From NCBI GenBank assembly GCA_002269645.1, contig NIVC01000578.1, forward strand, positions 541,202 to 605,201: DNA of 64,000 nt, in the 5' to 3' direction. Source of the stretch: Macrostomum lignano. Taxonomy: Eukaryota. The position numbers and the translations under genes are program-made. This document shows, in pieces, positions 8,940 through 45,246 of this stretch (positions are counted from its first letter, which is position 1; every line of letters starts with the position of its first letter). The notes under the pieces were generated by a model. It saw only the letters and a program-made list of their open reading frames with translations. It was not told where the DNA came from and searched no databases.

Positions 8940-10594
8940 TCAATGACTCATCAGCTGACTGAGCAGCACCAGCAAAACTTGGAGAGTCAGCGCGCTGCCA
9001 CCTGGACACCCAAGCGGCAACGACGCACCGGACGGGAGCTCCGGCTCAATGGGAGTGCAGGCCTTGGCGTCCGCAGCCAGCAGGTCCTGCAGCAGCTGCA
9101 GTCCAATCTCCGGCCGCTCAGTCACCACGGAGTGTCCGGCACCGATCACCGTCCGGTACCTGATCCGGCCGCCCAGGTAGGACCTCTGGACGCCTCCGAT
9201 CTGCAGTCCGAAGCCCGGCGCCCGCATCGAGTAGAGCCAGGCGCCCTCGCCCTCGCGCAACGGATCCACGGGCAGCCGGTCCAGCAGCTGCTGCGTGCAC
9301 CCCAGAGGCAGCATCCAGTCCAGGGCCCCGTGGTACAGCAGCACCGACACGCAGCTGCTGGCAGCTGTCACCAGCTGCTGCAGAACATCTTTGTTTCTTC
9401 TTTGATAGTGTCCGGTTATCAGGACATTGCACAAGCTGTAGTTCACCTGGCCGCTCACGCCAAGAGCTCTCTGCACTCTGATGTCAGCCATGAAGCTGCT
9501 CAGGCCCGTCGTGTTCGAGCAGGGGTAGCCGCCACTTTCGCTGCTCAAGAAGCAGGGCTGCGCCAGGTTGTAAGGGTTCACTTGTGCCGCCTCCGAGCTC
9601 TGCGGGTGCATCGGTAGGCTTAGCCAGTCAGCCAGCTCGCAGAGGGGCTTCAGTGAGAGCCCAACTGCAGCCAGTGAGGAAGGCAGCAGTCATGCTCATC
9701 CCGCTAAGCCCTGAGCACTCATACGGATACGTACGGAGGCGCACACTCGACAAGGGTGCATTGTCATGGTCCGCGCCCACAAGGGTTGGCCCTCATAGGC
9801 GCGAATCTCAAAGCAATCTCCGAGTCAGTTTCCGTGCACGAGTCCCGAATTAACTGCTGGAATTAATTGCCGGAACTCACCAGATCGATGAGGTTGACCT
9901 CATCAGACCGAATGCCCAGCGCCTTCGTGACTGCTTCGCGATACGGCGACATGTCAAAGTCGTTGATTGTAACGTGCAGGCCGTTGCCCACGGCGATGCC
10001 CTTCAGGTTGATGAGGCTGGGCCAATGCCCGCCGTCGATGATGGCGCTGGCCAGCAACGGGATGTAGATCCCCGCGTAGCTCTCTCCCGCGATGTAGAAG
10101 GCCCGGCCTCGGTACTCGGGGAACAGGCTGTAGAAGTGGAGCAGCGCTCCCAGGTTCAGCCGCGTGGTCGCGTTATCGTTGAGCTCGGACGGGTCGGTGG
10201 GTCCGGGCTCGCTCAGGCCGACACCGCTGGGCGAGTCGATGTACAGCACGTTGGCCAGCCGGTTCCACGCGAAGTCGTTGCGCTCCAGCTCGGCGCGGTC
10301 GTTCGCCAGGAACGGCCCGTTCGTCATGAGCAGGCCGCCGACCGAGGAGCAGCCGGGACCGCCGTTCATCCACAGCACGAGCGGAGCCGTCGCGGCGTCC
10401 ACGTGGGAGCTCTCGACCAGCCAGTAGAAGAGGCGCCGGCTGCCGCCGCTGCCGCTGCTGGAGGTCAGGTAGCCCGAGTACTGGGTGAAGTTCGGGCGGA
10501 ACAGCAGCCGCGGCAGCTCCTCGACGCGGCGTCTCTGGCACTCGGCGAGCGCGCAGCAGCAGAGGCAGAGCGCCAGAGTCAGAACGGGCCGCAT
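8940..10594 (-). CDS. Serine carboxypeptidase, S10 family (cathepsin A-like), paralog A; 2 exons (10594-9881, 9599-8940), about 457 aa
   Basis: Signal peptide, QYSGYL, LFYWLVES, WMNGGPGCSS, GESYAG (catalytic Ser), YHGALD (Asp), GAGH (His). Phase-0 intron CTG|GTGAGT...CCCGCAG|. Hydrophobic C-terminal tail. Confidence 0.93.
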
Positions 10595-10660
10595 GGTTGC
10601 TTGCAGCAACACCTCGGCTCAGGTGCGTAAGCCCTAGCGCGTCGACATTCTTGTGACCAC

Positions 10661-10667
10661 TTTTATA
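10661..10667 (-). promoter_or_regulatory. Candidate TATA box of carboxypeptidase A
   Basis: TATAAAA on the minus strand about 70 nt upstream of the ATG. Confidence 0.5.
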
Positions 10668-11001
10668 CGCTAAATTGGCGCACTCGCGGACATGCATATT
10701 CACGAGTACAATATATTCCATAGGCACCCCACTGGCTGTTGGAGCGAATTCACTATAAACAAACAGCTCTGCAGCCATGTAGAAATTTGCACTGCATCAG
10801 TGAAATTTGGCACCATTGCTGCAAGGTTTAAAAGAGTTTTTGGTCAGAAAAGATGCTTCTGTTGGCTGCTTATCTCGAGCTGGCGATCTCGTTCTCTGTC
10901 TCTCAAGCAGTTGCGTAAACAGTTTAGCAATGTCTTAGTAATAGTGCTGAAAGGGGTAAAGTGCTTGCAACTTGTGGCTCTTTTGACTGCCCGTATAGCG
11001 G

Positions 11002-11004
<3 letters not shown>

Positions 11005-11034
<30 letters not shown>

Positions 11035-11037
11035 GTG

Positions 11038-11114
<77 letters not shown>

Positions 11115-11117
11115 GCC

Positions 11118-11180
<63 letters not shown>

Positions 11181-11200
11181 GTGTGTCTGTGTCTGTCCGC
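11005..11200. repeat. (TCTG)n microsatellite
   Basis: Direct observation. Confidence 0.97.
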
Positions 11201-12755
11201 CTGTCTGATTCAACGATCTCTAGACTTAAAGGCTCCGCTCCCAGAGCAGACGGTCAGTTCCCCATCCCGTAATGGCAGTTTTGGATGGCCCCCCGCTGTG
11301 AGGACTTCGCAACAGCAGGTTTTCCCGGTTTTAATTTACTTCAGTTGCCAACTGAATTTTAGGAACCAGTGTTCATTGTGTGCGGCTGGTTTTACTTTTA
11401 CTTGAACAAAGCGATTGCAAGCAACTCTGACCATCTGCTTACAGTAACGGAGCAAAAACACAGCAATTAACCATCAACCCCTATTGCGAGCGGACGAATC
11501 AAGTCTAGCCATTTGGGTATTAACAAATTTGACACAGTCAAAGCTGTCAGGGTTAAAATCTAATTCCGATGCAATGGCTGACATCTAAGAGTCATACAGC
11601 AGGTACCCGGCAGGTGTCAGCGTCCACAAGCCAAGAATGAATTTTCACCCTGTTCCGTTGAATCCTGGTGAAAGCGCACACGTGGATCTCCACATTGTTG
11701 CTTAGTAGCAAGGTTCGGACTCAGTCTTCTGCCAACCTGAGCCCCTACTCGGCAAGTGGCTGAGCACCCATTTTCTGGTGAGCTTGCAGACATCGGATTT
11801 TCTGAGCTCCTTCTTTCCTGGGGTGATTAAGCCGCGAGATGAATGCCGGCAGAGACAATGGCGCTCGGGTGATTGACTCGCGCCCAGCCCAGCAGCTTAG
11901 AGGCCGATCCCAGCTGAGCTCGGGCGTGGATCAATCGATCAGCCGAGCTCGAGGACATTAAAGTCGGGCGATTCCGACCGGCCCGGTCCCGCGGGGCCTG
12001 AGATCTCTGCCGCCTCCTGAGCAGAGCGGGCCGCGGCCAAGACAGCCCGGAGAGATTTTCTCTATTAAAGGCGCGGCACCGCTGCAGGTGAGCTGTTGAC
12101 TACTCTCTATTAAAGAGGGAGGCACTTAATCCTCTACCCCCCACTCCGGTTCGAAAGACCGGCCAAAAAGTCGAATAGGAGATTGGGAACAGTTGGATAA
12201 TCTTCTTCCTCCCTGGACAAGGCGCCGCCTGCCGCCCCGCATGGACCGCCGACCCAGATGGGAGATTGGGCACCCACCTGAGCCTCCTGGAAGTCTTGAG
12301 AAAGAGAATCTGGAGAGCCAACTCGTGTTCAAATTCCCATTGTGCATGCAGATTGGGACTGCAGAAGATTCAGAGTAATCTGGCTTAAGCTGTTTATTAA
12401 ATAATTTTTTGCATCAAAAACATTTCCACCAGTGCAAAAATATTTCAGTTTAGTTATTGTTTTTTCCCCAAATTTCTGCAGACTCTGGTAAAGGCTCCTA
12501 AAAGGGAGCGGACTCTGAGCTCTACCGCAGATCCCCTTGCGGCTTGGCCGCTGGTCTCGGGGACGCCCGGGATTCGATCCGCAGCCGCAATCAAGTCGGG
12601 GCTCTCCTATTGGCTGAGAGGGCCCGACTCTCCCGGACTCAAACCGAGAGCCAATTTATACGGCCCCAACCGGAACAACTGGTTGAGATCGGCAGGGCTG
12701 AGACACTGCTTAGAACTAGCTTGTGCTTCAGAAGTCCCGACAATCCGCAACACAA

Positions 12756-13693
12756 ATGGCTGGGCGCGCAGCGGTAGCGAGCCTGCAGCAGGCATTCGAG
12801 CAGCAGAAGCAGCAGCTGCGGCGCCTCGGACTCGAACCTGCGCACTCCGGCGAAGACGAAAAAGAGGAGGAGGAGGCAGCGGAGCGCCGGGACGAGGAGA
12901 TGCCGGGCGGCGCGAGCGGAGGTGGCAAGAAGACCGAAGGCAGGGAGCTGAGGTGAGTCTGAGAAGCTTCGAGTCTGATGCTGCATCATTCGAGATGCTG
13001 TATTTACATGTATATCAATCATATCATGCCGCCGGACCCCCCGTCAGGCTGAAAATCAACAGCCGCGAGCGCAAGCGGATGCACGACCTGAACTCGGCGC
13101 TGGACGGCCTCCGGGAGGTGATCCCGTACGCCACGGGGCCGTCAGTGAAGAAGCTGTCGAAGATCGCCACCCTCCTGCTGGCCAAGAACTACATCCTGAT
13201 GCTGCAGAGCTCGCTTGATGAGATGAAGAAGCTGCTGTCAGAGGTCTACAAGCACCGGGGCGGCAGCGGCGGCGGGACTGGGGAGTCACCGCGGTCGACG
13301 CCAACTTCGCCGTCCGACTTGACGACTCCAGCGGCAGCAGCCGGGGCACCCGCAGTGACAGCGGCGCCACTGCCGCCGCCACCAGCGCCAACAACGTCAG
13401 CGACACCAATGCCTTCGACTCCCACCCCGGCGATGCTGCTGCCGCAGCCGCCAGCGATGCCGACGCACTCGCAGCAGCAGCAGCATCCATTTGCCGGAGG
13501 CCTATTCCCACCGCACCTGCTGTACCAGCAGCACCCGCTGCACTGCTGGTGCCCGGACTGCTCGCTGCAGCGCCATCACCTGCGACAGGCGGCTGCAGCT
13601 GCCGCGGCCGTGGCTGCCGCCGCTGCGATAGCCGCGCCGTCTTCGGCCAGTGCAGCGGGCGGCAAAGCAACCGGAAGCTGCTTCAGCGACTGA
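12756..13693 (+). CDS. Olig: Olig-family bHLH transcription factor; exons 12756-12952 and 13048-13693, about 280 aa
   Basis: Splicing AG|GTGAGT...CCGTCAG|G restores [55 protein letters not shown], which matches the Olig2/3 bHLH. C-terminal CWCPDC resembles the Olig/bHLHe22 CxCxxC motif. Confidence 0.92.
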
Positions 13694-14164
13694 CAGGCAA
13701 CTGCGGCTCGTGTAGCCTCGAAGGCTTTTGACTGAATGAACCAATCGAATAAACTGCTACTTGTGCAGCGCATATTCTGCTGTGTTGTGAAGTTCCATGC
13801 ACTAATAATACAGGCTAATGTTTAACTTGACTCTCCCGGCACTTTCTTGTCTGCATGTCAGTTTTGACACTTTATGCATCTACAGTTTTGTAGAAACTTT
13901 CTACTTACTTCTAAGTCACTCACTGCAGTAGCGCATTGGCACTAATGGCAACGAACTGCTGGCTCCGAGTTAGCGCAGCTTTGCTGTCAATAACAGTTTA
14001 AATATAAATAAGACAAAGCATTGCACCTACACCTGCTCCACTGAAGCCTTTTTCAAAATAAGACTTTCAAATTTCTTTAAAAATGAAACATTGGTGTCTT
14101 TTGCGCGATATACGGTTGCAATAGTTTCAAGTTGGTCATTTTCCACTGAAAAGTTAGTCTTCAT

Positions 14165-14401
14165 TTGCAACAATGACATTCTCTAATTTGCAACAATGAT
14201 ATTCTCTAATTTGCAACAATGACATTCTCTAATTTGCAACAATGACATTCTCTAATTTGCAACAATGACATTCTCTAATTTGCAACAATGACATTCTCTA
14301 ATTTGCAACAATGACATTCTCTAATTTGCAACAATGACATTCTCTAATTTGCAACAATGACATTCTCTAATTTGCAACAATGACATTCTCTAATTTGCAA
14401 C
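14165..14401. repeat. 23-bp minisatellite (AATTTGCAACAATGACATTCTCT)
   Basis: Tandem array. Confidence 0.95.
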
Positions 14402-15621
14402 AGAAACTTCGGGTACAACCAAGGTACCTGATATGCGAGTGGAGAAGGTACCTGAGAAAAAAGATTGTACTACGTTTACTATTACTACGGTACAGCTGTT
14501 AGTCGGTGAGTAAACCGCTAGAGGGAACTCATTGACCAGCCCTCAGGCTCAAAGCAGTGCTAATTGCAGTCATTCGCAAGTGAACAGTGCGGCTAATCCT
14601 CCAGTTCAAGACTCGCTGACCCGGGGGACTCGCATCTCTCAAGTGTCAAAACAGCGCGCCGAGGCTAATTAAACTGCCTGGAGGATATGACAGCCGCCGG
14701 GGAACCCTCGAGAGCTGGGCGGACCGCCCGCTGCGCCTCGCCTCTCGGAACTTTCTCCCCCCGCCTTTCAAACAGGCGAGTCCGAATCCCCCGCTATCCG
14801 TCCGGACGGCAGGGCGGACAGACGGCGGGTGGACGCCGGTCTGTTTGCAAACTGATTAGTCTGAATGACGCGGGCCTGAGAGCTGCTCAGCAGACGCGAG
14901 AGCTGGCTAGGAACCAGGGCGGGTCGGGACCTCCGCGACCCCCGCCACCGCTGCGATCTCCAGCGCACTGCAGGCAGGGCCGGCCCAATTAAAGTGTGTA
15001 GCGTGAGGCGGCCGGCCCCGCGCTGAGCTCGCAGCGGGGGGCCAACAGGAGCCACCCGGCGGCGATTAAAATTGGGCCATCGAGCGGCCAATCTGGACGG
15101 ACCGGCTTCGCCCGCTCAGCGAGAGTGGCCCGGCAAGATTAAAAGCAAGCATTTCATTTCTACCTTTCAGAGCTTCCGGCCCGCTGCCTCACTTCAAAGA
15201 GGATGCAGCAAATACAGTAGGGCACCGATCTTTGTTGCTGGCTGACCCCTGGAGTTCGCCACAAAGACTATTAGCTCGAATTTTTAAGTCAGGAAGCAAG
15301 CAGGCCAAACTGAAAAGGAAATCGCTGACATATGCGTTTGAGCAAATGCAGCTTGACGACCAAAACCGCATGGCAACTCGGACTGCCTAAAATATAAGAA
15401 CTGTTGGTCCCCGCTCACACACTCGGGCTCCACTGAAGCATTGCTGATCGCTTATTATGGTGACTTGGGCTTCAATGGCGGCTCGCATTGCGCGGGAGAT
15501 GCCGCGACTGAGCGAGTGCTCCGTGTGGCAAAAGCAAGGCAAGGAGGTTCCATGGAAGAAATATCACGTAAACTAAAACACCAATATTCATATTTTTGTT
15601 TCGTAGAAACGTTCCGATTGT

Positions 15622-15985
15622 TGACTCAATGATCGCCCCATAAACTGACTCAGTGACTCAATGATCGCCCCATAAACTGACTCAGTGACTCAATGATCGC
15701 CCCATAAACTGACTCAGTGACTCAATGATCGCCCCATAAACTGACTCAGTGACTCAATGATCGCCCCATAAACTGACTCAGTGACTCAATGATCGCCTCA
15801 TAAACTGACTCAGTGACTCAATGATCGCCCCATAAACTGACTGAGTGACTCAATGATCGCCCCATAAACTGACTGAGTGACTTATTGATCGCCCCATAAA
15901 CTGACTCAGTGACTTATTGATCGCCGCATAAACTGACTCAGTGACTTATTGATCGCCCCATAAACTGACTCAGTGACTTAATGAT
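15622..15985. repeat. 32-bp minisatellite (GACTCAATGATCGCCCCATAAACTGACTCAGT)
   Basis: Contiguous units with no spacers. Confidence 0.95.
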
Positions 15986-16165
15986 CACCCTATAACAAAA
16001 TAATAACAAAGTAAAAGCAGAGAAGGTTTCGCGTTAGATTTTTTGTATCCAATTAGACTCAGCCAGTTAAACAAAGCAGATTCAGTGTATTTGGCTCAGC
16101 CTGACAATTTCTGTCACAGAGCGGCACACAAACAGTTCCGGGTTTCTGCAATGCAAATTCAATTC

Positions 16166-18661
16166 TTAAGCGACCAGCACGCAGGAGCCGCCGACCTTCT
16201 TGATCTTCTCCTCGGCCTTCTTGCTGAAGAATTTCGCCTTCACGATGACCGGCACCTTCGGCATGTTGCCCTTGCCCAGCACCTTGAAGAAGCCCTGCGG
16301 GTGAGCACAAAATACAATAGGATACAGCGATTGTTGCGTGTCATTCCATGGTGTGAAACAGTTTTGAGGGCCGATCCCATGGTGTGGGACAGTTTGAAGG
16401 CAGATCCCATGGTGTGGGACAGTTTTGAGGGCCGATCCCATGGTGTGGGACAGTTTTGAGGGCCGATCCCATGGTGTGGGACAGTTTTGAGGGCCGATCC
16501 CATGGTGTGGGACAGTTTGAAGGCAGATTCCATGGTGTGGGACAGTTTGAAGGCAGATCCCATGGTGTGGGACAGTTTTGAGGGCCGATCCCATGGTGTG
16601 GGGCAGTTCGAAGGCAGATTCCATGGTGTGGGACAGTTTTGAGGGCCGATCCCATGGTGTGAAACAGTTTTGAGGGCCGATCCCATGGTGTGGGACAGTT
16701 TGAAGGCAGATCCCATGGTGTGGGACAGTTTTGAGGGCCGATCCCATGGTGTGGGACAGTTTTGAGGGCCGATCCCATGGTGTGGGGCAGTTTGAAGGCA
16801 GATTCCATGGTGTGGGACAGTTTGAAGGCAGATCCCATGGTGTGGGACAGTTTTGAGGGCCGATCCCATGGTGTGGGGCAGTTCGAAGGCAGATTCCATG
16901 GTGTGGGACAGTTTTGAGGGCCGATCCCATGGTGTGAAACAGTTTTGAGGGCCGATCCCATGGTGTGGGACAGTTTGAAGGCAGATCCCATGGTGTGGGA
17001 CAGTTTTGAGGGCCGATCCCATGGTGTGGGACAGTTTTGAGGGCCGATCCCATGGTGTGGGGCAGTTTGAAGGCAGATTCCATGGTGTGGGACAGTTTGA
17101 AGGCAGATCCCATGGTGTGGGACAGTTTTGAGGGCCGATCCCATGGTGTGGGGCAGTTCGAAGGCAGATTCCATGGTGTGGGACAGTTTGAAGGCAGATT
17201 CTATGGTGTGGGGCAGTTTGAAGGCAGATTCCATGGTGTGGGACAGTTTGAAGGCAGATTCCATGGTGTGGGGCAGTTTGAAGGCAGATTCCATGGTGTG
17301 GGACAGTTTGAAGGCAGATTCCATGGTGTGGGACAGTTTGAAGGCAGATTCCATGGTGTGGGGCAGTTTGAAGGCAGATTCCATGGTGTGGGACAGTTTG
17401 AAGGCAGATCCCATGGTGTGGGACAGTTTTGAGGGCCGATCCCATGGTGTGGGACAGTTTTGAGGGCCGATCCCATGGTGTGGGACAGTTTTGAGGGCCG
17501 ATCCCATGGTGTGGGACAGTTTTGAGGGCCGATCCCATGGTGTGGGACAGTTTGAAGGCAGATTCCATGGTGTGGGACAGTTTGAAGGCAGATCCCATGG
17601 TGTGGGACAGTTTTGAGGGCCGATCCCATGGTGTGGGGCAGTTCGAAGGCAGATTCCATGGTGTGGGACAGTTTGAAGGCAGATTCTATGGTGTGGGGCA
17701 GTTTGAAGGCAGATTCCATGGTGTGGGACAGTTTGAAGGCAGATTCCATGGTGTGGGACAGTTTGAAGGCAGATTCCATGGTGTGGGGCAGTTTGAAGGC
17801 AGATTCCATGGTGTGGGACAGTTTGAAGGCAGATTCCATGGTGTGGGACAGTTTGAAGGCAGATTCCATGGTGTGGGGCAGTTTGAAGGCAGATTCCATG
17901 GTGTGGGGCAGTTTGAAGGCAGATTCCATGGTGTGGGGCAGTTTGAAGGCAGATTCCATGGTGTGGGACAGTTTGAAGGCAGATTCCATGGTGTGGGGCA
18001 GTTTGAAGGCAGATTCCATGGTGTGGGACAGTTTGAAGGCAGATTCCATGGTGTGGGACAGTTTGAAGGCAGATTCCATGGTGTGGGGCAGTTTGAAGGC
18101 AGATTCCATGGTGTGGGACAGTTTGAAGGCAGATTCCATGGTGTGGGGCAGTTTGAAGGCAGATTCTATGGTGTGGGGCAGTTTGAAGGCAGATTCTATG
18201 GTGTGGGGCAGTTTGAAGGCAGATTCTATGGTGTGGGGCAGTTTGAAGGCAGATTCTATGGTGTGGGGCAGTTTGAAGGCAGATTCCATGGTGTGGGACA
18301 GTTTGAAGGCAGATTCCATGGTGTGGGGCAGACTTACGGCCTGAACGCAGTCAATAACGGGCACTTTGCCCTCCTTGTTTCCATCCTTATACTTGTCGTA
18401 GGTCTGCTGAGAGACCAGAGACCAGAGCTTGTCGGTGTTGACAGCCGGGCAGTAGTAGGGATTCCGCCTGAGATGGAAGTGGCGCATGCCAACCTTGCCG
18501 AAGTAGCCGGGGTGGTACTTGTCAAAGTTGGTGCGGTGGTGGTGGGCGCCGCCGGCGTTACCGCGGCCGCTGGGGTGCTTGCGGTGCTTGCCAATCCGGC
18601 CGTGGCCGTGCGACACGTGGCCGCGCAGCTTGCGGGTCTTTGTGGGCTTCAGCTTGGACAT
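16166..18661 (-). CDS. RPL27A: 60S ribosomal protein L27a (uL15); exons 18661-18338 and 16294-16166, 150 aa
   Basis: [50 protein letters not shown] and [35 protein letters not shown]. Phase-0 intron GCC|GTAAGT...CCGCAG|GGC. Confidence 0.97.
16345..18331. repeat. 30/31-bp minisatellite filling the RPL27A intron
   Basis: Units GTTTGAAGGCAGATTCCATGGTGTGGGGCA and GTTTTGAGGGCCGATCCCATGGTGTGGGACA. Confidence 0.97.
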
Positions 18662-18819
18662 GGCGGACCGGCCTGGAGCTGCAAATTCAGTTGGCGGTTT
18701 CCGAAATTAAAATTTGCCTTTTTTGTTTAGATTCCTACTTGTAGTAGGCACGTGCGAACAAAAAAAGTTAAGGCCAAACAGAGTGATTGACTTGTCAACA
18801 CAGCTTATTTTTAACCATA

Positions 18820-19210
18820 AGGATCTGAGGCTGGCCCAGCAACTGAGGATCTGGGAGGCTGGCCCAGCAACTGAGGATCTGGGAGGCTGGCCCAGCAACT
18901 GAGGATCTGGGAGGCTGGTCCAGCAACTGAGGATCTGAGGCTGGCCCAGCAACTGAGGATCTGGGAGGCTGGCCCAGCATCTGGGGATCTGGTAGGCTGG
19001 CTGCCCAGCAACTGAGGATCTGGGAGGCTGGCCCAGCAACTGAGGATCTGGGAGGCTGGCCCAGCAACTGAGGATCTGAGGCTGGCCCAGCAACTGAGGA
19101 TCTGAGGCTGGCCCAGCAACTGAGGATCTGAGGGTTGCCCAGCAGTTGAGGATCTGAGGGTTGCCCAGCAGCTGAGGATTTAGGAGGGTGGTCCAAGAAC
19201 TGAGGATCTG
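18820..19210. repeat. About 28-bp minisatellite between EIF2A and RPL27A
   Basis: CTGAGGATCTGGGAGGCTGGCCCAGCAA units with variants. Confidence 0.93.
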
Positions 19211-19433
19211 GGAGGGTCTTGGGACATCAGGTGTCGGTGGCTCAGCTTATTTCCTATTCATAAACAGTAAATACAAACAGGAGCAAAAAGCACCAAATCT
19301 CACAATGCAATCTCACAAGAAACAAAACAAAAACGGGAACAAAAGTCCAAATTATATTTCCTTCTCTCAAGCGGCAGCAAACAGAAATAGGAGCAGTTAT
19401 TATGAGTCGGAATCTCAGTCAGAACATCGGGGG

Positions 19434-22114: not shown

Positions 22115-22483
22115 CTGTTTCAATTTGGGAATTGATTGGAGGTTTAGAAACACTGAAGCAGTATGGATTAGCACTTGCTGTCTCTCTAAACCAATAAACA
22201 TAAGGCATATGTAAATACCACAATTTACTGCTTAAGAATTGTAAACCAAAATTGGAACAAATATCTGGCAATTAGAATGTTACTGTTTTTCTATTTTCTT
22301 TCCTAATTGAAAAATTAACTCCAAAATTAAAAACATTTTTACAATATTTTGCCTATTGACTAAAACTTATGGCAAAAAAATCAATAAGCACAAAGACTTT
22401 TGTGCAGGTTGACAATTACACTTTTTTCCTTTTGTATGCCATCATTGCCATGCATGCTGAGGTTTTAGAATGTACACCAGAAA

Positions 22484-23703: not shown

Positions 23704-23791
23704 ACCAGAAAATGATAGCATTCACTACATCTTCCATAATATAGTACTAGTATTAATATCAGCTTAATTAAGTTGTTAATAATTTAATACT

Positions 23792-24318
23792 GAGAGCTAT
23801 CAACATTTCAGATTTTATTTGAGACAAGATTCAAGACAACACAAGACAAGATGCAATTCTAAAATTCATTTTTTAGTCTGCTATTATATACCTTGTCAAA
23901 AAACTAAAATAATAACTAAAAGAAAACATATACAAGCTCATATATAACCATGTTTGTTAATTGACTAAAACTGCCTGACATTAGCCAGAACTTGAATTTT
24001 TCAAAATTACCTTACTGATTATCATTCATGCTAAAACATATGCCAGGTAATTTGCATTTTGATCAAAAATTAAATTGCTTGGCCAGTGTAAATCAAGAGG
24101 TTGCACATGTATATTAAGCATAATACAACAAACAGGTATATTTATAAAAAAAATTTGTCTTTTTATTTCTCATCCCCCCATTTTTAAATGTAAATATTAA
24201 AAAAATTATTGAATCTTGTTTTGAAATTTTTTCAAGAAACTTAAGAGATTTCTTGAGACAAGAAAAAATTGAGACCTTAACTTGAATCTTATCTCATTGA
24301 GATTTTATGATGCCTCTA
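23792..24318. mobile_element. Possible older hAT-like MITE
   Basis: Degenerate termini GAGAGCTATC / GATGCCTCTA, near-TSD TTAATACT / TTAATATT, and TGAGACAAGA motifs at both ends. Confidence 0.35.
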
Positions 24319-28838: not shown

Positions 28839-34227
<5,389 letters not shown>

Positions 34228-34774
34228 ACTTTTCTAACCTGACTTCAAACTGAACTGACGATATTTGGGGAAAATCAACAGCATCGAACCGAATGTAAAG
34301 CAGAGCATTACATTTCATCTTTCACACAGTTCATTCTTCGGAAACCTTTTAATTTGTATGCTAATGAAATTTAATATAAACTATGAGATACTACATGGGC
34401 GTTACCTAATAAAACTGTTAAATCTCGTTTCGCACCAGCCTCAGTTTCGCGCTAGTGTAAATATAAATAGCCCGTGGATCACTAGACACAGAGGAGTAAA
34501 ATCAAACACGAAACCCCATAGTCTAAAAACCAGTGATGATCGATTTGGATGCTTGAGTTTTGGATGCGCAGTTACCGGATTTTGTTTGTTTAGAGCACAA
34601 ATCTGTCTTGCAACAAAATATTTATCAACAGCAATCAGTAGGTCGGCTGAACCCTTCTGTCCGACCTGGGGGTTACCGAAGTGAAATGCGCCATCACACG
34701 AGCTGAAGACTTTACGTTGCCGAATTGCAACCATTCAGCTAAATTATCATCAGGCGCTGCTGCTGTGAAATCAA

Positions 34775-35845
34775 AGTGCGCAGTATTCTTCGCTTTGCTT
34801 TTACTTCAGCGCTATCATTTTTGCTTCAATTTTTGCGTCAATCGAAAAGAAGCGCTCGAATGAACCGGCTGCCTCGCTATTGACGTTTCTATTAAACGCC
34901 TTTTACCTCACCTATTTCATTTTACTCCATTATTTTTTGAGTCATACTACTTGTATTGGGTTTGTCAGTAGCAATCATAGTTTGTTGTTGTTCTGGTTCT
35001 GTTAAATTTGCACTTTGGTGCCTATATGCCGCGATCTCCGGGCAATGCTTGTCATCAGCTTGCCTAGGTGTGAACGGTGAGCCGCGCTCTGCTAATGCGG
35101 ATGCTGCGGCTGCTAAAAGCAGCGGGAGAGGCAACCGGCGAGGCAAACGGAGTCGTCTTCGCAAGTCTGCACGTCTGCTGGAGCCGGCCCCAACCCAATC
35201 GGCTCTGCCTGGTGGCGCTGGAGACCGTGAAGCCCAACAAGTCCGGGCCTCAGCTGTACTACCAGGCAGCGTGTTTAGAATTGCCACCTTCAACTGTCGC
35301 ACTCTCAAATCTGCTTGGACGAGGGGAATGCTGGCTGGACATTGTAATGCTGCCGGAGGTGTCAGTTATGAAGCAAGACGGCCTCCAACGTGAGGATCCC
35401 GGTGCCGGCTGCACCCTGTTTTTCACCTCTGCGGACGGTCGACGCTCTAGTCGGACCACGGTTGCAGCAGAGTTTCTGCTGTGTCACTGTGTCACCTCGG
35501 CTGTTGCGTGTGGATGTGAGGCTGCGAGGCCGTAACGCCCGGCTTTTCTACGCGTATGCACCGACAGCTGCCCACCCTGGTGGTGCTTGGCGATCTCTGC
35601 ACTGTCGCGGAGAGGTCCCAGCGCACCCCCTTTGCGTCCAACACTAAAATGAATGGCTACTCTACTGTGCTTACGGCTCGTACGGTCTTCTGTCTTCACT
35701 TTGCTTTCCTTCCGCGCAATCATTTTTGCTTCAATTTTTGCGTCAATCGAAAAGAAGCGCTCGAATGAACCGTCTGCCTCGCTATTGATCGCGTCATTCT
35801 ATACGTTTCTATAAAACGCCTTTTACCTCACCTATTTCATTTTTT
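34775..35845 (+). repeat. Pair of about 150-bp direct repeats (about 34775-34925 and 35680-35845)
   Basis: Shared core ATCATTTTTGCTTCAATTTTTGCGTCAATCGAAAAGAAGCGCTCGAATGAACCG...CCTTTTACCTCACCTATTTCATTT. Confidence 0.9.
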
Positions 35846-38060
35846 CAATCAGTGTGATACGAATGTCGCCGCATGATTTGGTGTCGACCAATACGCGTTT
35901 CCGCAAGCCAGTTTTTCGATTGGAAACCAAAGCCGGCTGTAAGCGAAGGAAGCTGAAGCTTTCGGAAGCCGAAATGTCACGACCCACCGGGCCCAGCTCG
36001 ATTACATTCTAGTTCACTACCGCGAACGCAGACGGGTGACAGACTGCGACACGATGGCCCCTCTGTCCATCCGATCTGACCATCGCCTGCTTTTCTGCAA
36101 CCTTCGCACCCGGGACCCGCTCTAGAGGCCGCCCAAGCGACCCCCACGCCGCTACTACAGGGCTCTGCGAGACTCCAGCACCCGCGGCAGGTTCGCCTAC
36201 GCGTTCGCCGCCGTACTCGGAGCACCGGCAACTATTCCGAAATAAGCGCGGCAGTGGCGACGACAGCTAACAAGACGCTGCTTCTGATGCAACCTGCAGC
36301 CTGTAGTCTCCCCGTCTGGGCGAGTGGCAAGGAGGTTCAGGAGGCGAGGCGGACAGTCGAGGCTGCGACGGATCAGGCGACCGACGGCTGAGGCCGAAAA
36401 AGCCCTACCGGACGTTTACACTACCGGTAGGCAGCAGCAAGTCGCGGTTGACGATGCCATCTGAAGTGTCACCTCTGCGGGACTCAACCAACGGGATCGG
36501 CTCGTCTGGCCTACAATCAACGCCCTGACTGGCCGCAAAGAGAAGACGGCGCTGAACCTGACCGGCGATACACCAGAGGCACGCAGAAACGAGCTGCGCG
36601 ACTTCTTCGCTGATATTGTCAACGCGCCGCCACCGCCACCGCCTCAGCCAGAAGCGATGCCATTGCCGCTCGAGACGGCGCTGTCGTCGCAGGAGGAATT
36701 CAGCACCCAGCCAGTGACCAGCAACGACGCAGTGCAGTTCGCTCGCCTGGCGCCGGGAGGTCGCGCCCCCGGACCGGATGAGGTGCCTATCGAGGCGCTC
36801 GAGTCACAAGGGTCGCCACTGAGGTAGCCCTCGTGATGAACGACGTCCTCTCTGGAGGTGCCGCGCCCTGCGAGTATACAACAGCGCACATCGTCGCGAT
36901 TCCGAAAATGCCTGGCACGACACGGAAGGAGGAGCACTGAAGCTGTTCAACCGTGTGCTGCTAGCTGGGTTGTTGCCTGTGCTCGAATAGTTTCTGCGCC
37001 CTGAGCAGATCGGATTCCGCCCATATCGCGGTACAGTGACGCAGATCCTAGCTCTCCGCCGCATCATCGTGGAGGCGCGAATCCATCAGTCAAGTCTCGC
37101 GGTGATCTTCATTGACTTAATCAAGGCTTTTGACTCGTTGGTTCACGGCGCACTGCCTCTCGTGCTTCGCGCATACAATGTACCGGAGCAACTGATTTCC
37201 GCCATCATGGCGATGTACAAGGACACGACCGCTTCGGTGATGACGCCAGACAGACTGTCGGACCAATTCAGCACGTCGTCAGGCGTGCTGCAGGGTGACA
37301 CTCTGGCATCTTTCCTGTTTGTGCTGACACTGGATTTGGCGCTGAGGACCGGTCTGCCAGACCAGGATGATGGCTTCCTGGGTTCCTGCTGAGAAGACGC
37401 ACGAGTCGGCGGAACCCGGAGAAGCGGCTCTCAGTTCTCGGCTACGCGGATGACCTCGCGCTGCTCTCATCGACGGCTGAAGGCGCCCAGCGGCTGCTTG
37501 GACGGCCTGACGGCAGCAGCATCGCGAGTCGGCCTCAAGCTGAACGCGCGGAAGACGGTAGTCTTCACGGTGCCCTCCGACCTGCCTGCCGAGATCAACT
37601 ACCGAGACGCTGCCGGAGATGCTATCATGCTTACCCGCTGCCAGCGGTTCTTGTACCTCGGCGGCCTCGTGCCGGACGTCGCCGACGACTTGGTGAGACG
37701 ACGAGGACTGGCCTAAGCCGCGTTTCGTTCTGTGCACCCCGTGCTCCATTCTAAGGCCCTAAATGACGGGCTCAGGGCTCTGTTGTTTCTGGCAGTCGTT
37801 GAGACTGTCTTGTTGTACAAAGCTGAAACCTGGACCCTGACGGACGCCTTAGAGAGGCAGCTGGACGATGCGCATGCGGCCATGCTGCGTGCGGCGTTCG
37901 GAGTGCGCAGCGGTCCAGGCAGCGAGACCAGCGCCGCGCTCTACACGAGGGCGCGCCTGATGCTGCTTTCTGACCTGCTGCGCGGGCGATGACTTCGACT
38001 GGCTGGCCACGTCATTCGGACGGAGGCCCGCTGCCCTGAGCCGCTACAGGAAGTGCTGTC
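35240..38060 (+). mobile_element. Decayed non-LTR retrotransposon (APE endonuclease + RT, RTE-like); many stops and frameshifts
   Basis: APE motifs IATFNCRTL, AYAPT and SDHRL; RT motifs QIGFRP, FIDLIKAFDS, GVLQGDTL and YADD (about 37442-37455). Confidence 0.9.
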
Positions 38061-38317
38061 GTATGTATCAAAGAAATGCGTTGTTTGCGTTGCATAAATT
38101 TTCCTGCAAAACGCGCATCAGCTACTGAATCAAGAGTAGTTGACTGAATCGACATTTGTGATCTTAAAAATGTCTCATTAGCTTTGAGATCGACTTTCAT
38201 GCTGAAACAGCGAGAACTGACTGCATGTCTTTATATGAGCACAGAATGCTACAGGATTCAGCAAGACATCTCGTCAAATATCAAGCAATTCGGCTTCAAG
38301 GTTTGAAAAGTACAAAA

Positions 38318-38748
38318 TACTCAGCGCTAGACTCAGTGCTAGACTCAGTGCTAGACTCAGTGCTAGACTCAGTGCTAGACTCAGTGCTAGACTCAGTGCT
38401 AGACTCAGTGCTAGACTCAGTGCTAGACTCAGTGCTAGACTCAGTGCTAGACTCTGTGCTAGACTCAGTGCTAGACTCAGTGCTAGACTCAGTGTTAGAC
38501 TCAGTGCTAGACTCAGTGTTAGACTCAGTGCTAGACTCAGTGTTAGACTCAGTTCTAGACTCAGTGTTAGACTCAGTGCTAGACTCAGTGCTAGACTCAG
38601 TGCTAGACTCAGTGCTAGACTCAGTGCTAGACTCAGTGCTAGACTCAGTGCTAGACTCAGTGCTAGACTCAGTGCTAGACTCAGTGCTAGACTCAGTGCT
38701 AGACTCAGTGCTAGACTCAGTGCTAGACTCAGTGCTAGACTCAGTGCT
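38318..38748. repeat. 12-bp minisatellite (GCTAGACTCAGT)
   Basis: Tandem array. Confidence 0.97.
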
Positions 38749-38859
38749 GAGACTGGAGGTCAGCACGAGGTCATGTACATGCACTGTACTTTAGCAGCGA
38801 TTTGTTTCCTCGTTCTCGCTGATCTCGAGAAAGATCTGGAAGGAACTCGGCAGGCCGCC

Positions 38860-39367
38860 ACTAAATTCGGCCAAGTCTCGGATGCTGGCCTACGACGGGC
38901 ACGTGATGAAGCAGCTCGGCATCTTGGAGTGCCTGGTGGAGACTGGCGGCCCTGATGGCCGCTTCGCTGCGGCGGAGTTGCCCTTCATTGAATGCGAGCA
39001 GAAGTTCGGGTTGCTGGGCCGGGATCTGCTCAGCTCGCTGCCTGCTCACCACTCGGATGAGGCCAAGCCGCCCAGCAACAACAGGTGCGAGAGCTTGCTG
39101 GGCATCAAGGCAGCGGTTGGCAGAGATTCTGTGGAAGGCGGGAGCCAGGCCGATTTTCCAACCAGCCAGAGAGCTGGCGCTGCGTTGTGTCCACTGGTGA
39201 AGAAGAAGCTGGACCTGATGGAGAAGGCGGGCATAGTTGAGATGGTGACGTCCTCAGGGTGGGCGCCCCATAGTGGTGACGGTGAAGTCCGACCACATCT
39301 GACTAAAACAGCCTTCTCAAAGATGGCTAACAAGAAGCTGTTCTGCCGACTGGATTTCTCTGACTAA
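38860..39367 (+). mobile_element. Ty3/Gypsy pol fragment (protease-RT junction), degenerate
   Basis: LAYDG..MKQLG...LLGRDLL, KLDLMEKAGIVEMVTSSGWAP, FSKM..KKLFCRLDFSD. Confidence 0.7.
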
Positions 39368-40315
39368 ACTCACTCTGATTACACTCACTCTGATTACACT
39401 CACTCTGATTACACTCACTCTGATTACACTCACTCTGATTACACTCACTCTGATTACACTCACTCTGATTACACTCACTCTGATTACATTCACTCTGATT
39501 ACACTACTCTGATTACACTCACTCTGATTACACTCACTCTGATTACACTCACTCTGATTACACTCACTCTGATTACACTCACTCTGATTACATTCACTCT
39601 GATTACACTACTCTGATTACACTACTCTGATTACACTCACTCTGATTACACTCACTCTGATTACACTCACTCTGATTACACTCACTCTGATTACATTCAC
39701 TCTGATTACACTACTCTGATTACACTCACTCTGATTACACTCACTCTGATTACACCCACCCTGATTACACTCACTCTGATTACACTACTCTGATTATACT
39801 CACCCTGATTACACTCAGTCTGATTACACTCACTCTGATTACACTCAGTCTGATTACACTCAGTCTGATTACACTCACTCTGATTACACTCACTCTGATT
39901 ACACTACTCTGATTACACTCACTCTGACTACACTCACTCTGATTACACTCACTCTGATTACACTCACTCTGACTACACTCACTCTAATTACACTCACTCT
40001 GATTAAATTCACTCTGATTACACTACTCTGATTACACTCACTCTGATTACACTACTCTGATTACACTCACTCTGATTACACTCACTCTGATTACACTCAC
40101 TCTGATTACACTCACTCTGATTACACTACTCTGATTACACTACTCTGATTACACTCACTCTGATTACACTCACTCTGATTACACTCACTCTGATTACACT
40201 CACTCGGATTACACTCACTCGGATTACACTCACTCTGATTACACTCACTCTGATTACACTCACTCTGATTACACTCACTCAGATTACACTCACTCTGATT
40301 ACACTCACTCTCATT
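39365..40315. repeat. 15-bp minisatellite (ACTCACTCTGATTAC)
   Basis: Tandem array. Confidence 0.97.
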
Positions 40316-41262
40316 CTACAGCTAAACTGAAGAGAGCACTAGAAGTATTCCATCTTTTTAATTTAAGCTATTTTGCGACCCAGTGGTTGACCCAGGTACC
40401 TGTTTGAAACACATGATAGAGGACTTAGCGATCCAGGTTTGAGGTTGGCTTTGGAAAGTGTACCCTGTACTCGACACTCATCGCCATCGGCGTCGAAAAT
40501 TTCGCGGCGCAACTTGCTGTGTTGAACGCCGAATGTAAACTTTGACGTCCCTCACAGTATCTCAGATGTGACGCTAAGCGGAATTTCAGAACACAGCCAA
40601 CAAGCGCAAACATCTTGAAAGCGCAAAAGCGAGGAGCATCCAGATTGACAATGTCGGCAAGTTTTGAAGCCAAAAAGCAATTCCGCGTGACGCATGAATT
40701 TGACGGTTTTCTCTCGCATTGAATTCCTGGCCAAACCAGGTCAAGCCCAGGCCGCCCGCCGCGCTGACAGCGCATTTCGCTCCCTTGCGGCCCGGCCCGC
40801 CCACAGGTGCCTGCAGCTGCCGCACAGCCCCCGCACAGCGGAGTTCGGTGAATGGCTGGCCGTCCATTATCACTACTAGGCTTCTTCGCTAAGCAATTTT
40901 CACACCCTCGGGGTCACAGGCGACTTTTCTAGCCCCGCAGCCCCGGGAATTCAAGGCGTCACAAAGTTCGGCAACCCAGGGGCTGCAGGGCGAACAGGCG
41001 CAGCGACTTTGCGGATTCGCTTGCGATAAGCCAGTCCGCCCCGCCGGGGGTCGCTGCGGCTTTAAGTGGCCGCTGACAAGGCGGCTCCGCTAATTGCCGC
41101 CCCGATTCAAGCAAGTCAAAACGCCGCATCAGCTGTCGAAACTGAAGCCACCGGCCCCGCTAGTTGCGGTTAATTGCCTTTCGAATTGGCTTGTTCTGCA
41201 ACATTAGCAATTTTTGCTGCATAAAGTGATCAGCGCCGTTGACAGGCAGAAAGCTCTGACAG

Positions 41263-42852
41263 ATGCGGCCCGTTCTGACCATGGCGCTCTGCCTCTGCTG
41301 CTGCGCGCTCGCCGAGTGCCAGAGACGCCGCGTCGAGGAGCTGCCGCGGCTGCTGTTCCGCCCGAACTTCACCCAGTACTCGGGCTACCTGACCTCCAGC
41401 AGCGGCAGCGGCGGCAGCCGGCGCCTCTTCTACTGGCTGGTCGAGAGCTCCCACGTGGACGCCGCGACGGCTCCGCTCGTGCTGTGGATGAACGGCGGTC
41501 CCGGCTGCTCCTCGGTCGGCGGCCTGCTCATGACGAACGGGCCGTTCCTGGCGAACGACCGCGCCGAGCTGGAGCGCAACGACTTCGCGTGGAACCGGCT
41601 GGCCAACGTGCTGTACATCGACTCGCCCAGCGGTGTCGGCCTGAGCGAGCCCGGACCCACCGACCCGACCGAGCTCAACGATAACGCGACCACGCGGCTG
41701 AACCTGGGAGCGCTGCTCCACTTCTACAGCTTGTTCCCCGAGTACCGAGGCCGGGCCTTCTACATCGCGGGAGAGAGCTACGCGGGGATCTACATCCCGC
41801 TGCTGGCCAGCGCTATCATCGACGGTGGGCATTGGCCCAGCCTCATCAACCTGAAGGGCATCGCCGTGGGCAACGGCCTGCACGTGTCAATAAACGACAA
41901 CGCTTTGCTGGAAACCCGCAAGGAATTCGCAAAAATTTTGGGCATTTCGTTCAGAAATGACACAGCAATCGAAGTAAGTTAAAATCGAAGCTTGCTTTGT
42001 CCTTACGAGGTAAAACATTTCCTCAAACTTTTTGAGCACATCAGTCAGGTACAAGGTGCCTTAGAGGCCACTAGAAGAGTGGAAGCATGCGAGTAGGCTG
42101 TGTTTTCTAATGAGTCTTGATTAAGCAGGGACTGATATTCGCCCAAATCGAATTTTTCTGTGACCAAAATTTCTTTGCAGACGAACCTGTCAGTCAACTC
42201 TTACAACGTGATGCACACCTGCTACGAGCAGGAGTCGGTGAATGTGTACCCCTGTCTGAACACGACCGGCCTGGTCACTTATCTTCGCGACAAGCGCGTC
42301 CGTGAGGCCTTGGGTGTGTCGGACTCCGTGTCCGAGAATTACGTCATCTGCAGTCTGGTCAAGATATTCACGCACTATAACTACTTGGACAGGGACATCC
42401 TGCCCGAGCTGCGTAGGCTCGCCTCAGCAGATGTTTTCGTACTGCTGTACCACGGCACTCTGGACTACATGATCCCTACAATGCTCACCCAGCGGCTGCT
42501 GGAGCGGCTGCCGCAAGATAATGACACGGAGGGCGCCTGGTTCTACTGCCACTGGACGTTCGGTCGAGCCTCAACCCAGATCGGCGGCATGCAGAGATCC
42601 TACCTGGGCGGCCGCCTATTCTACCGCACCGTCATTGGCGCTGGGCACACGGTGGTCACCGACCGTCCCGACGTCGGCTTCCAGATTTTCACCGACTTCC
42701 TGAGCCCGGACAAAGACCGGCAGCCGCGATGTCTGCCGCCTGAAAGTCTGGAGGATGCTTCGAGCTGCGGCGCTGAGTTTACAGGTGTTTGCTCGTCGGC
42801 TGTCTGGCTGACGGCAGTCCTGGCTGCTGCTGGCGTTGCCTCCTGGCTGTAG
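41263..42852 (+). CDS. Serine carboxypeptidase S10, paralog B; exons 41263-41973 and 42181-42852, about 460 aa
   Basis: GESYAG, YHGTLD and GAGH triad. Phase-0 intron GAA|GTAAGT...TTTGCAG|. Hydrophobic C-terminal tail. Confidence 0.93.
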
Positions 42853-43703
42853 CACCGCTGCGCTGCTCCCCGGCCGCAGATGCCTGGCAGCTGATTTCTC
42901 TGGATTTGAGCACGCGACAGTGGGGGGGGGGAGTCTTAGCGCAGTTCACCGTGCTGGAAGCGGCCTCGCGCTGCTCAGAGGAGTAAACTTTGCACCTGCG
43001 CTCCGCATGGCATTCTGTTAGTCGATTTTTTCGTTTACAAATTTAGCAATTTTTGTTTTCATACCTTTTTAGAATACTCAAATTATAACATTTGCTCCTG
43101 CTAGATGTATGCGTCTCGTACTAACAAATACACATAGCGCCATTCAAAGTCTGCAGCGTGTTGCCTAAACAGCAAGCCTCGCGAGTCGAGTACCAGCATA
43201 AGGCCAGCACTGCAGAAGCCACTCAATACTCGCACAGGTGCCTAAGACTTAATGCGCAGATACTCGCAATTGCTTGGCTAAAACCTGAGCCATTCGGTCG
43301 CGAAGCACTGGTTTGTACCCTACAGGCGTGTAATAAAACTGCATCCAGGCTGTCTGTAAAGGTGAAACGAAAATAGCACATAGTGCTCGAAGGGTGCGGC
43401 TACTGAATATTCATTGCATTGTTAATCACTATACTTCAGACGACAAAACGCAAGAGAATGTTTTGCGTTCGCTGAAAAAGTCGAGTGCAAGAGTGCACGA
43501 CCTGCTGAGTGCAAGTCGGGTTCAAACTCGAATGCAAACCGCTGTTCTTTCTCTGCAGCAAAGTGCCAGGGCCCACAGCGCAAAAACAGCAGGGCTGAGT
43601 CAGCTTAGCTGTCATAAATTAAGGGTGACACCAGAATAAGTATAAGAAGGATTGAAACTTTGCGCAGCCCTTAGCCGAAAAAATCAAATTGGATTCGCCA
43701 ACC

Positions 43704-45246
43704 ATGCGGCCCGTTCTGAGCCTGGCGCTCTGCCTCTGCTGCTGCGCTCTCGCCGAGTGCCAGAGACGCCGCGTCGAGGAGCTGCCGCGGCTGCTGTTCC
43801 GCCCGAACTTCACCCAGTACTCGGGCTACCTGACCTCCAGCAGCGGCAGCGGCGGCAGCCGGCGCCTCTTCTACTGGCTGGTCGAGAGCTCCCACGTGGA
43901 CGCCGCGACGGCTCCGCTCGTGCTGTGGATGAACGGCGGTCCCGGCTGCTCCTCGGTCGGTGGCCTGCTCATGACGAACGGGCCGTTCCTGGCGAACGAC
44001 CGCGCCGAGCTGGAGCGCAACGACTTCGCGTGGAACCGGCTGGCCAACGTGCTGTACATCGACTCGCCCAGCGGTGTCGGCCTGAGCGAGCCCGGACCCA
44101 CCGACCCGACCGAGCTCAACGATAACGCGACCACGCGGCTGAACCTGGGAGCGCTGCTCCACTTCTACAGCCTGTTCCCCGAGTACCGAGGCCGGGCCTT
44201 CTACATCGCGGGAGAGAGCTACGCGGGGATCTACATCCCGCTGCTGGCCAGCGCCATCATCGACGGCGGGCATTGGCCCAGCCTCATCAACCTGAAGGGC
44301 ATCGCCGTGGGCAACGGCCTGCACATGCCATACAATGAGTCGGCTTTTAAATCGGACCGCAGAGCCCTGACGGACGCGATGGGCATCAGCATTGGTAACG
44401 TCAGTGTTCTCGAGCTGTCTGTGGTGAGTAAAGTGCTTTTGCTTAACGGCTTCGCTGTATGATATTATATATCAAGTATATTCCATGATATTACGATAGC
44501 TCAGGTGTGACAGCACTGAAATGATATCTATTCAGCCAGTGTTTACAATCCACCAGGGTTCCAATGGTTCAGAGCATTCACAGCGGCTGTCAGTGAATTT
44601 GTACAACGTCGCTCATCCGTGGTACCCTGGAAGTGAAGCCGATGGCTATCCCGGCCTCAACTCAACTGGACTCGCCAGCTTCTTAAACGACAGGGACGTG
44701 CAAAATGCTCTGGGCGTGAATGAATCAACTTTACAGAAATTCATCCTCTGCCACGATGACATAAACAGAATCTACAGGAAGACGGAGCGTGACGTTCTCA
44801 GTGAATTCGTTACACTCGCCAATCACAGTGTCTCGGTGCTGCTGTACACCGGAGCCCTGGACTTGCTGCTGCCCGTGGGGTTGACGCTGCAGCTGCTGGA
44901 GCGGCTGTCCCCGGACCCAGTCAGCGGCCAGGACGCCTGGTTCTGGTGTTTGAGGAGGCCGGGCTACGGACTGCAGATCGGAGGCATCCAGAGGTCCTAC
45001 CTGGGCGGCCGAATCAGGTACCGGACGGTGATCGGCGCCGGACACTCCGTGGCAACGGACCGGCCAGAGATCGGGCTGCAGCTGCTGCAGGACCTGCTGG
45101 AGCCATCGAGGATCTGGCCGCAGAACTGTTTGCAGTTCGGAAGTGAAAATGCAGAAGTCTGCAATGGCCAGGGCAGACAGTTTGGACAGCAGATCCTGCT
45201 GCTAGGGACTCTGCTGGTGCTTTGCTTCAAGGGAACAGATGCTTGA
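43704..45246 (+). CDS. Serine carboxypeptidase S10, paralog C; exons 43704-44423 and 44584-45246
   Basis: GESYAG, YTGALD and GAGH triad. Phase-0 intron GTG|GTGAGT...TCACAG|. Hydrophobic C-terminal tail. Confidence 0.92.

Follow-up and report, generated by a model that had tools for sequence, protein, structure and literature searches.

How do old, well-separated paralogous genes come to share an almost identical first half? The question is raised by three predicted serine carboxypeptidase genes of the flatworm Macrostomum lignano, here called A, B and C, which lie in a 64,000-nucleotide stretch of contig NIVC01000578.1 (assembly GCA_002269645.1, positions 541,202 to 605,201 of the forward strand; hereafter the window). 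The first 621 coding bases of these genes are nearly the same, and the remaining coding sequence diverges abruptly from the same point onward. Repeated ectopic gene conversion among old paralogs very probably maintains the near-identity of this 5' block. The evidence comes from the step in identity, the contrast in synonymous divergence on its two sides, and the distribution of variants among paralogs and among copies of the locus.

The shared block and its limits

The block extends from the ATG through the His codon of the GNGLH motif, comprises 621 nt without gaps and occurs in exactly three copies in the window (blastn with the B block as query). The B block is 98.87% identical to positions 10594-9974 (-) and 98.87% identical to 43704-44324, and A and C are 99.04% identical to each other. 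The three blocks vary at 10 sites in all, with 6 synonymous differences and 4 nonsynonymous ones confined to codons 6, 7 and 136. The initial annotation of this DNA had described N-terminal halves that were nearly identical down to the synonymous sites, a description that the measured identities of 98.9-99.0% bear out. The block encodes the signal peptide, the WMNGGPGCSS oxyanion and carboxylate-binding motif, the catalytic Ser of GESYAG (at 10087-10070 in A) and the last core strand ahead of the cap.

Past the block, the encoded peptides continue as HVTIND in A, HVSIND in B and HMPYNE in C, the same mid-exon transition that had been noticed at the outset. Nucleotide identity falls to about 40-60% inside one 30-nt window, the drop taking no more than 0-15 nt, and protein identity among the paralogs after the block is 42-52%, in agreement with the earlier estimate of about one-half. 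MaxChi places the breakpoints at nt 621 for A-C and B-C and at nt 636 for A-B (chi-square 281-372), with 6-10 pairwise differences across the left 621-636 nt against 297-348 across the right 714-747 nt. The longest identical runs measure 212-515 nt, whereas shuffled differences give runs of at most 62 nt, and none of 2000 shuffles reaches the observed length. Because of these breakpoints and run lengths, the identity profile is stepwise and not the gradual one that the initial annotation had set against its own interpretation.

Going upstream, identity ends with the ATG in B; it reaches -5 between A and C and -17 between C and D, D being a further paralog described below. No similarity between paralogs was found in the 800 nt upstream, the introns or the 500 nt downstream (blastn word 7, E<=0.01). 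The regions upstream do not align between the genes, in line with the earlier claim of differing 5' untranslated regions, and a recent duplication of whole genes is therefore excluded. Spread by a transposon, at which no dedicated test was aimed, was rejected because the block begins with the ATG and runs in frame into the gene's own exon, and because no repeat-like ends appear in the flanks that were read.

Synonymous sites separate the two parts of the genes most clearly. We estimated synonymous (dS) and nonsynonymous (dN) divergence by the Nei-Gojobori method on a codon alignment, with the block defined as codons 1-207 and the remainder as the rest of the coding sequence. Between paralogs, dS is 0.016-0.035 in the block against 0.83-1.72 in the rest, where dN reaches 0.44-0.62; synonymous divergence is thus about 40-fold lower inside the block. 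The dS contrast and the positive Sawyer- and MaxChi-type tests, which are close to the window dS and GENECONV checks proposed with the initial annotation, both came out in favour of its reading. A paralog that does not take part in conversion (protein P0007) has a protein identity of just 55% across this half, and purifying selection alone cannot yield 99% nucleotide identity.

Exchange among paralogs

The locus exists in a second copy. Contig NIVC01001673.1 of the same assembly is colinear with the window and 93-99.5% identical in the unique flanks, and therefore represents another copy of the same locus; A', B' and C' are arranged on it as A, B and C are in the window, with unchanged architecture, and ~60 kb beyond C' it has a fourth paralog type, D'. 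A fifth type, E, is present in older protein sets. The family thus comprises at least five types rather than the three genes initially considered. The genome of M. lignano is neopolyploid: its three subgenomes, which are 1.4-2.4% apart in single-nucleotide polymorphisms (SNPs), are all present in the Mlig_3_7 assembly (PMC10733133). The window and NIVC01001673.1 differ by 1.5-2% SNPs over 39.9-42.5 kb and by about 0.1% over 42.6-48.2 kb. A change of subgenome, a chimeric scaffold or a homeologous exchange could account for the switch at ~42600, which lies in exon 2 of B. C and C' are in effect a single haplotype, and therefore only A/A' and B/B' provide independent comparisons.

In these two homeologous pairs dS is 0.019-0.035 both in the block and in the rest, which is about equal to the dS between paralogs within the block. 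Relationships inside the block conflict with orthology, the number of differing sites being 10 for B and B', 3 for B' and D' and 5 for B' and C. B' and D' have a cluster of differences at sites 570-577 in common (HRPG versus HWPS). The variant at site 17 occurs in A and B only, that at site 45 in C, C' and B', and that at site 258 in C, C' and D'. The B block has four private changes (sites 19, 469, 552 and 564) that are absent from its homeolog B', and the D-like patch by which B and B' differ is 8-57 nt long. Variants common to different paralogs imply that short patches have been transferred between paralogs. Together with the dS contrast, the abrupt breakpoints and the differences between homeologs, they uphold the initial proposal of gene conversion limited to the 5' coding part. 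The proposal that this conversion is recurrent fares less evenly: the mosaic of variants speaks for it, and its basis is a handful of sites together with a single pair of diverged haplotypes. We infer that conversion is ongoing rather than the relic of one burst.

The distribution of variable sites along the block points in the same direction. The first 45 or last 153 nt contain 15 of the 17 variable block sites (P about 2e-6, with the limits chosen after viewing the data). Such clustering is attributable to the need of conversion tracts for homology on both sides, because of which they seldom reach the edges. It is predicted by homology-dependent conversion, and not by a single recent replacement or by an artefact. 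Base composition may carry a further trace of the process. The GC content of third codon positions (GC3) stands at 0.94 for the block; in the zone of the second block described below it is 0.82-0.90 for A, C and D and 0.78 for B, and the cap and the tail have values of 0.59-0.74 and 0.64-0.72, respectively. Of the 10 private block changes, 8 replace G/C by A/T. The contrast in GC3 and the private changes would fit GC-biased conversion working against an A/T-biased input of mutations, with selection on codon usage as an alternative source.

The variable halves are themselves not uniformly diverged, contrary to the initial description. A second stretch of 123-139 nt around the catalytic His is common to A, C and D at 92-96% identity, with a proportion of synonymous differences (pS) of 0.08-0.26; paralog E has the same peptide as A, C and D there at the protein level. 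B is only ~70% identical to the others, with pS about 0.6. The second block reads as an older or rarer conversion tract that B appears to have escaped.

The process can be pictured as follows. A, B and C are old tandem or inverted paralogs of a cathepsin-A-like carboxypeptidase; D lies close by and E at another place in the genome. When one copy suffers a break, another would serve as the template for its repair, and the tract would extend only while similarity between the copies lasts. Towards 5' it would stop at the start codon, where unrelated upstream DNA begins, and towards 3' at the GNGLH codons, where the cap-domain sequence is diverged to about 40-60% nucleotide identity. Once set, such limits would be self-maintaining, because heteroduplexes are kept from forming across the diverged sequence beyond them. 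Selection may sharpen them further by acting against chimeric caps or swapped promoters, so that the limits might be held partly by selection. A shorter, older conversion block lies over the catalytic-His strand in A, C and D and not in B.

Several points weigh against repeated conversion. All sequences compared come from M. lignano, and the tree pattern in which blocks group by species and variable halves by paralog thus lies outside the data; the nearest proteins to A, B and C are all from M. lignano, and a profile search for relatives of the variable halves in other species gave only M. lignano proteins. Genome assemblies are available for M. cliftonense and M. hystrix (PMC10468722). The SNP-level mosaic rests on few sites, and short-read polishing can swap paralog variants in copies over 98% identical. 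The near-identity of C and C' removes one of the three homeologous comparisons. The high GC3 may partly reflect the codon usage of a conserved core instead of biased conversion. Finally, the similarity of paralog block divergence to homeolog divergence would also fit one homogenisation near the time of genome duplication, followed by a few small patches.

This last point also speaks for the alternative that a single recent event per gene placed the 5' half of one paralog onto old diverged genes, by unequal or inverted-repeat crossing-over or by replication template switching, with no later exchange. A block dS of 0.016-0.035 close to the homeolog divergence means that most of the homogenisation could date to one period, and the 3' limits agree within 15 nt. 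However, the block is carried by at least five gene types, one of them inverted 31 kb off and one ~60 kb off, and its limits vary from pair to pair (5' limit -17, -5 or 0; 3' limit 621-636). Nor does such an event readily explain the D-like patch that distinguishes B from B', the crowding of variable sites at the block edges instead of an even spread, or the presence of a separate block of intermediate age. We regard this alternative as improbable.

The initial annotation had also raised the concern that the 5' halves were collapsed or corrected to one paralog during assembly or polishing, the true copies being far more different. Mlig_3_7 is partly chimeric between subgenomes, chimeric scaffolds accounting for 36% of the assembly length (PMC10733133), and 621-nt repeats of more than 98% identity are prone to mis-polishing at single sites. 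Against this, the architecture is the same in both diverged copies of the locus, each of which has private SNPs, and the ML2 proteins P0003 and P0004 and the transcript-derived P0006 join the same block to other variable halves. Moreover, 621 nt is far below the length of the long reads used, which would span the unique flanks, and polishing cannot convert about 50% divergence to 99% identity with codon-exact limits. An artefact of this kind is very unlikely.

That the synonymous sites are instead frozen by a second function, such as an antisense open reading frame (ORF) or an RNA element, is extremely unlikely: antisense ORFs of 217-218 aa do span each block (9974-10630 (+), 41883-41230 (-) and 43671-44324 (-)), but they have no Pfam match and are most likely a by-product of GC3 0.94, being expected by chance at that composition because stop codons are A/T-rich; neither Rfam families nor tRNA genes gave a match anywhere in the window; P0007 shows this half of the protein evolving freely, to 55% identity; and constraint cannot account for the mosaic of variants among paralogs or the D-type patch in B'.

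Gene structure, protein domains and surroundings

The coordinates of the genes and of the two blocks, together with the related proteins, are collected in Table 1. The three genes match the S10 profile PF00450 with 272-285 bits against a gathering cut-off of 21.9, the match of C being uninterrupted (residues 30-421 on profile positions 3-418 of 420). The motifs of the catalytic triad are intact: GESYAG begins at residue 170, LLY(H/T)G(A/T)LD aligns with NGDVD of human cathepsin A (PPCA), and GAGH(S/T)V aligns with GAGHMV. Each gene has one phase 0 intron inside the same length-variable loop, after 238 (A), 237 (B) and 240 (C) codons of exon 1, and the intron position is therefore shared within the uncertainty of the indels, as had been supposed. 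Searches by blastn and tblastn found no more copies or decayed S10 remnants in the window beyond A, B and C.

Table 1. Positions and features of the carboxypeptidase genes, homogenised blocks and related proteins of M. lignano (positions are those of the window unless a contig is named)
Feature	Position	Strand	Description	Evidence or comparison
Gene A	8940..10594	-	predicted S10 serine carboxypeptidase, 457 aa	translation, splice sites, Pfam PF00450 E 1.1e-80
Gene A, parts	exon 1 10594-9881; intron 9880-9600; exon 2 9599-8940	-	intron 281 nt, GT..AG, phase 0; exon 2 with stop	
Gene B	41263..42852	+	predicted S10 serine carboxypeptidase, 460 aa	translation, splice sites, Pfam PF00450 E 2e-84
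Gene B, parts	exon 1 41263-41973; intron 41974-42180; exon 2 42181-42852	+	intron 207 nt, GT..AG, phase 0; exon 2 with stop	
Gene C	43704..45246	+	predicted S10 serine carboxypeptidase, 469 aa	translation, splice sites, Pfam PF00450 E 4.8e-83
Gene C, parts	exon 1 43704-44423; intron 44424-44556; exon 2 44557-45246	+	intron 133 nt, GT..AG, phase 0; exon 2 with stop	
Block in A	9974..10594	-	codons 1-207; GC3 0.94	98.9-99.0% identical to B and C blocks; dS to other paralogs 0.026-0.032
Block in B	41263..41883	+		identity with A runs on to 41898 (nt 636)
Block in C	43704..44324	+		identity with A from 43699, with D' from 43687
Second block in A	9084..9206	-	LQIGGVQRSYLGGRIRYRTVIGAGHSVVTERPEIGLQLLQD; holds catalytic His, GAGH at 9143-9132	nt identity 92% with C and D (123-130 nt), ~70% with B
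Second block in C	44971..45093	+	holds catalytic His, GAGH at 45034-45045	95.7% with D (139 nt), 92.3% with A (130 nt)
B stretch homologous to second block	42574..42696	+	not homogenised with A, C, D	67-77% identity per 30-nt window, pS 0.56-0.69
P0001	contig NIVC01001673.1		fourth paralog type D	same N-terminal block
P0002	contig NIVC01001673.1		A-type protein, homeologous counterpart of A	few differences
P0003, P0004	older, independent ML2 gene set		fifth type E	same block
P0005	contig NIVC01001673.1		public gene model, B' start merged with C'	
P0006			transcript-derived fragment of D	carries same block
P0007			paralog without the block	protein identity 55% over block region, 33-37% after

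The 3' limit of the block coincides with a junction in the protein fold. By phmmer, in which PDB sequence matches reach E 4.6e-59, residues 23-208 of C correspond to 6-182 of PPCA (1IVY) and residues 272-416 to 302-442, and residues 29-212 correspond to 6-184 of carboxypeptidase Y (CPY). In PPCA the block end thus falls at residue 182, and in CPY at about residue 179, the boundary between core and insertion. The core domain of CPY consists of residues 1-179 and 318-421, and its insertion domain, spanning 180-317, contains a V-shaped helix that covers the cavity of the active site and takes part in the substrate sites (PMC6609556); cathepsin A is likewise built of a catalytic core with a cap insertion (PMC8115914). 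Therefore, the block corresponds to the signal peptide and the first core segment, with WMNGGPGCSS and the GESYAG serine. The catalytic Asp and His lie downstream, and the assignment of the region after GNG to the cap is thereby confirmed. The AlphaFold model of D (predicted local distance difference test score 85, predicted template modelling score 0.88) has an alpha/beta-hydrolase core with an inserted cap, in which the last core strand (196-203) and a helix (212-225) are followed by a low-confidence region at 231-270, the short cap. The top Foldseek matches of this model are cathepsin A (template modelling score 0.73/0.82) and CPY (0.66/0.73).

The Macrostomum paralogs thus resemble PPCA and CPY in the PF00450 match, in fold and in the aligned GESYAG Ser, GxxD-motif Asp and GAGH His. 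They differ in the length of the cap, which is ~63 residues against about 120 in PPCA and 138 in CPY (PMC6609556), and, unlike PPCA, they have no long excision loop between the two cap-end cysteines; A-D are probably single-chain enzymes. A, B, C and D all end in a hydrophobic tail of 15-20 residues, a feature that sets them apart from cathepsin A and CPY and suggests a glycosylphosphatidylinositol or membrane anchor. In exon 2 of C, at about 44600-44660, both cap-end disulfide cysteines are lost (HPWY...YPG versus QPCY...YPC in the other paralogs). The second of them aligns with PPCA Cys303, and loss of the equivalent C262-C268 bond in CPY abolished activity (PMC6609556).

The initial annotation had presented the second half as one that diversifies for specificity, and as an adaptive process this was not supported. 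Pairwise dN/dS is 0.36-0.60 for the variable half as a whole, not above 1, and with synonymous sites saturated the test is a weak one; in 30-codon windows the ratio comes near or above 1 only where pS is saturated, and the sequences are too few for site models. The variable parts might nevertheless alter substrate preference.

The repeated block has already misled public annotation. Gene B has no protein of its own in the public protein collection searched, and P0005 (BOX15_Mlig001439g2; positions 10001-13199 of piece L003 of NIVC01001673.1) is a B/C chimera of 281 aa with a duplicated 29-aa stretch and a read-through intron. The block will equally confuse short-read mapping, expression counts and the design of probes for RNA interference or in situ hybridisation. 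In homeolog A' (piece L002, position about 10509; block site 509), a G>A substitution changes the nucleophile elbow from GESYAG to AEESYAG; it would either inactivate a redundant copy or be an error of sequencing.

The whole carboxypeptidase cluster is flanked by an inverted segmental duplication (3212-6708 / 56931-64000), the identity of which declines from 98% to 87% going inward and which carries an ankyrin-repeat exon (2515-3381) and weak Mab-21_C-like ORFs (4324-5367 + and 62232-62804 -). Its arms could mediate inversion of the roughly 50 kb in between. Between A and B, at 12683-13693 (+), lies an ORF with a helix-loop-helix DNA-binding domain (PF00010, E 1.8e-16). The window contains about 27 distinct minisatellite and microsatellite arrays, for example at 16343-18331, 39358-40315 and 32320-33073, among them one with 66 copies of a 30-bp unit and one with 64 copies of a 15-bp unit, and array copy numbers differ between the window and NIVC01001673.1. 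A segment of ~1 kb is present in two to three tandem copies of 99% identity (48015-48226, 49125-49266 and 51173-51352), with an array of ACCCGGCAGC in each.

Relation to known systems

A literature search on Macrostomum carboxypeptidases, on gene conversion in these genes and on three locus tags found nothing. Conversion that is restricted to one domain and sharply bounded is a known process, of which the Macrostomum locus gives a new and clean instance; it is not a new kind of system. As a natural case of conversion and divergence partitioning one gene it is unusually clean. Its value for study lies in the codon-sharp mid-exon limit at a fold junction, the pattern of edge erosion, the two tracts of different age and the polyploid setting, in which three subgenomes multiply the available templates. 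The locus could be used to measure tract length, GC bias and the rate of ectopic conversion in flatworms, and to examine models of how duplicates escape conversion.

A textbook parallel is that of the human fetal G-gamma and A-gamma globin genes, tandem duplicates that Slightom, Blechl and Smithies in 1980 are said to have found homogenised in the 5' part and diverged in the 3' part, with a sharp limit between. That limit reportedly lies at a simple-sequence repeat in an intron, only two genes take part, and the diverged parts are said to differ only slightly, against 40-60% identity in Macrostomum.

Partial conversion is also known from gene arrays. In the tandem arrays of Trypanosoma brucei, chimaeric copies were found in 21 of 47 arrays and read as partial gene conversion (PMC1855330). 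Those are polycistronic dosage arrays of near-identical copies, whereas the Macrostomum genes are old paralogs with separate promoters and introns.

A more far-reaching interpretation is that selection holds the conversion limit at the junction of core and cap, in a constant-plus-variable design in which each gene would join its own cap and tail to a common catalytic chassis that conversion keeps uniform in at least five genes across three subgenomes. We consider it unlikely. If true, it would give the animal a repertoire of surface-anchored carboxypeptidases differing in substrate preference or expression site, an enzyme counterpart of paired immune receptors. The reports on SIGLEC11/SIGLEC16 (PMC5701461) and the activating and inhibitory CEACAM pairs (PMC2832619, PMC7042247) describe a close likeness: a 5' module that is near-identical between paralogs, a remainder that differs, sharp limits and an exchange that recurs within lineages. 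In the receptors it is the ligand-binding ectodomain that is homogenised and the signalling tail that is distinct, and the limits of conversion usually lie in introns or between exons. In Macrostomum, on the other hand, homogenisation affects an enzyme's first core segment, with its nucleophile Ser, the limit falls mid-exon at a structural domain junction, and at least five genes take part, with no known arms-race rationale, in place of a pair of receptors.

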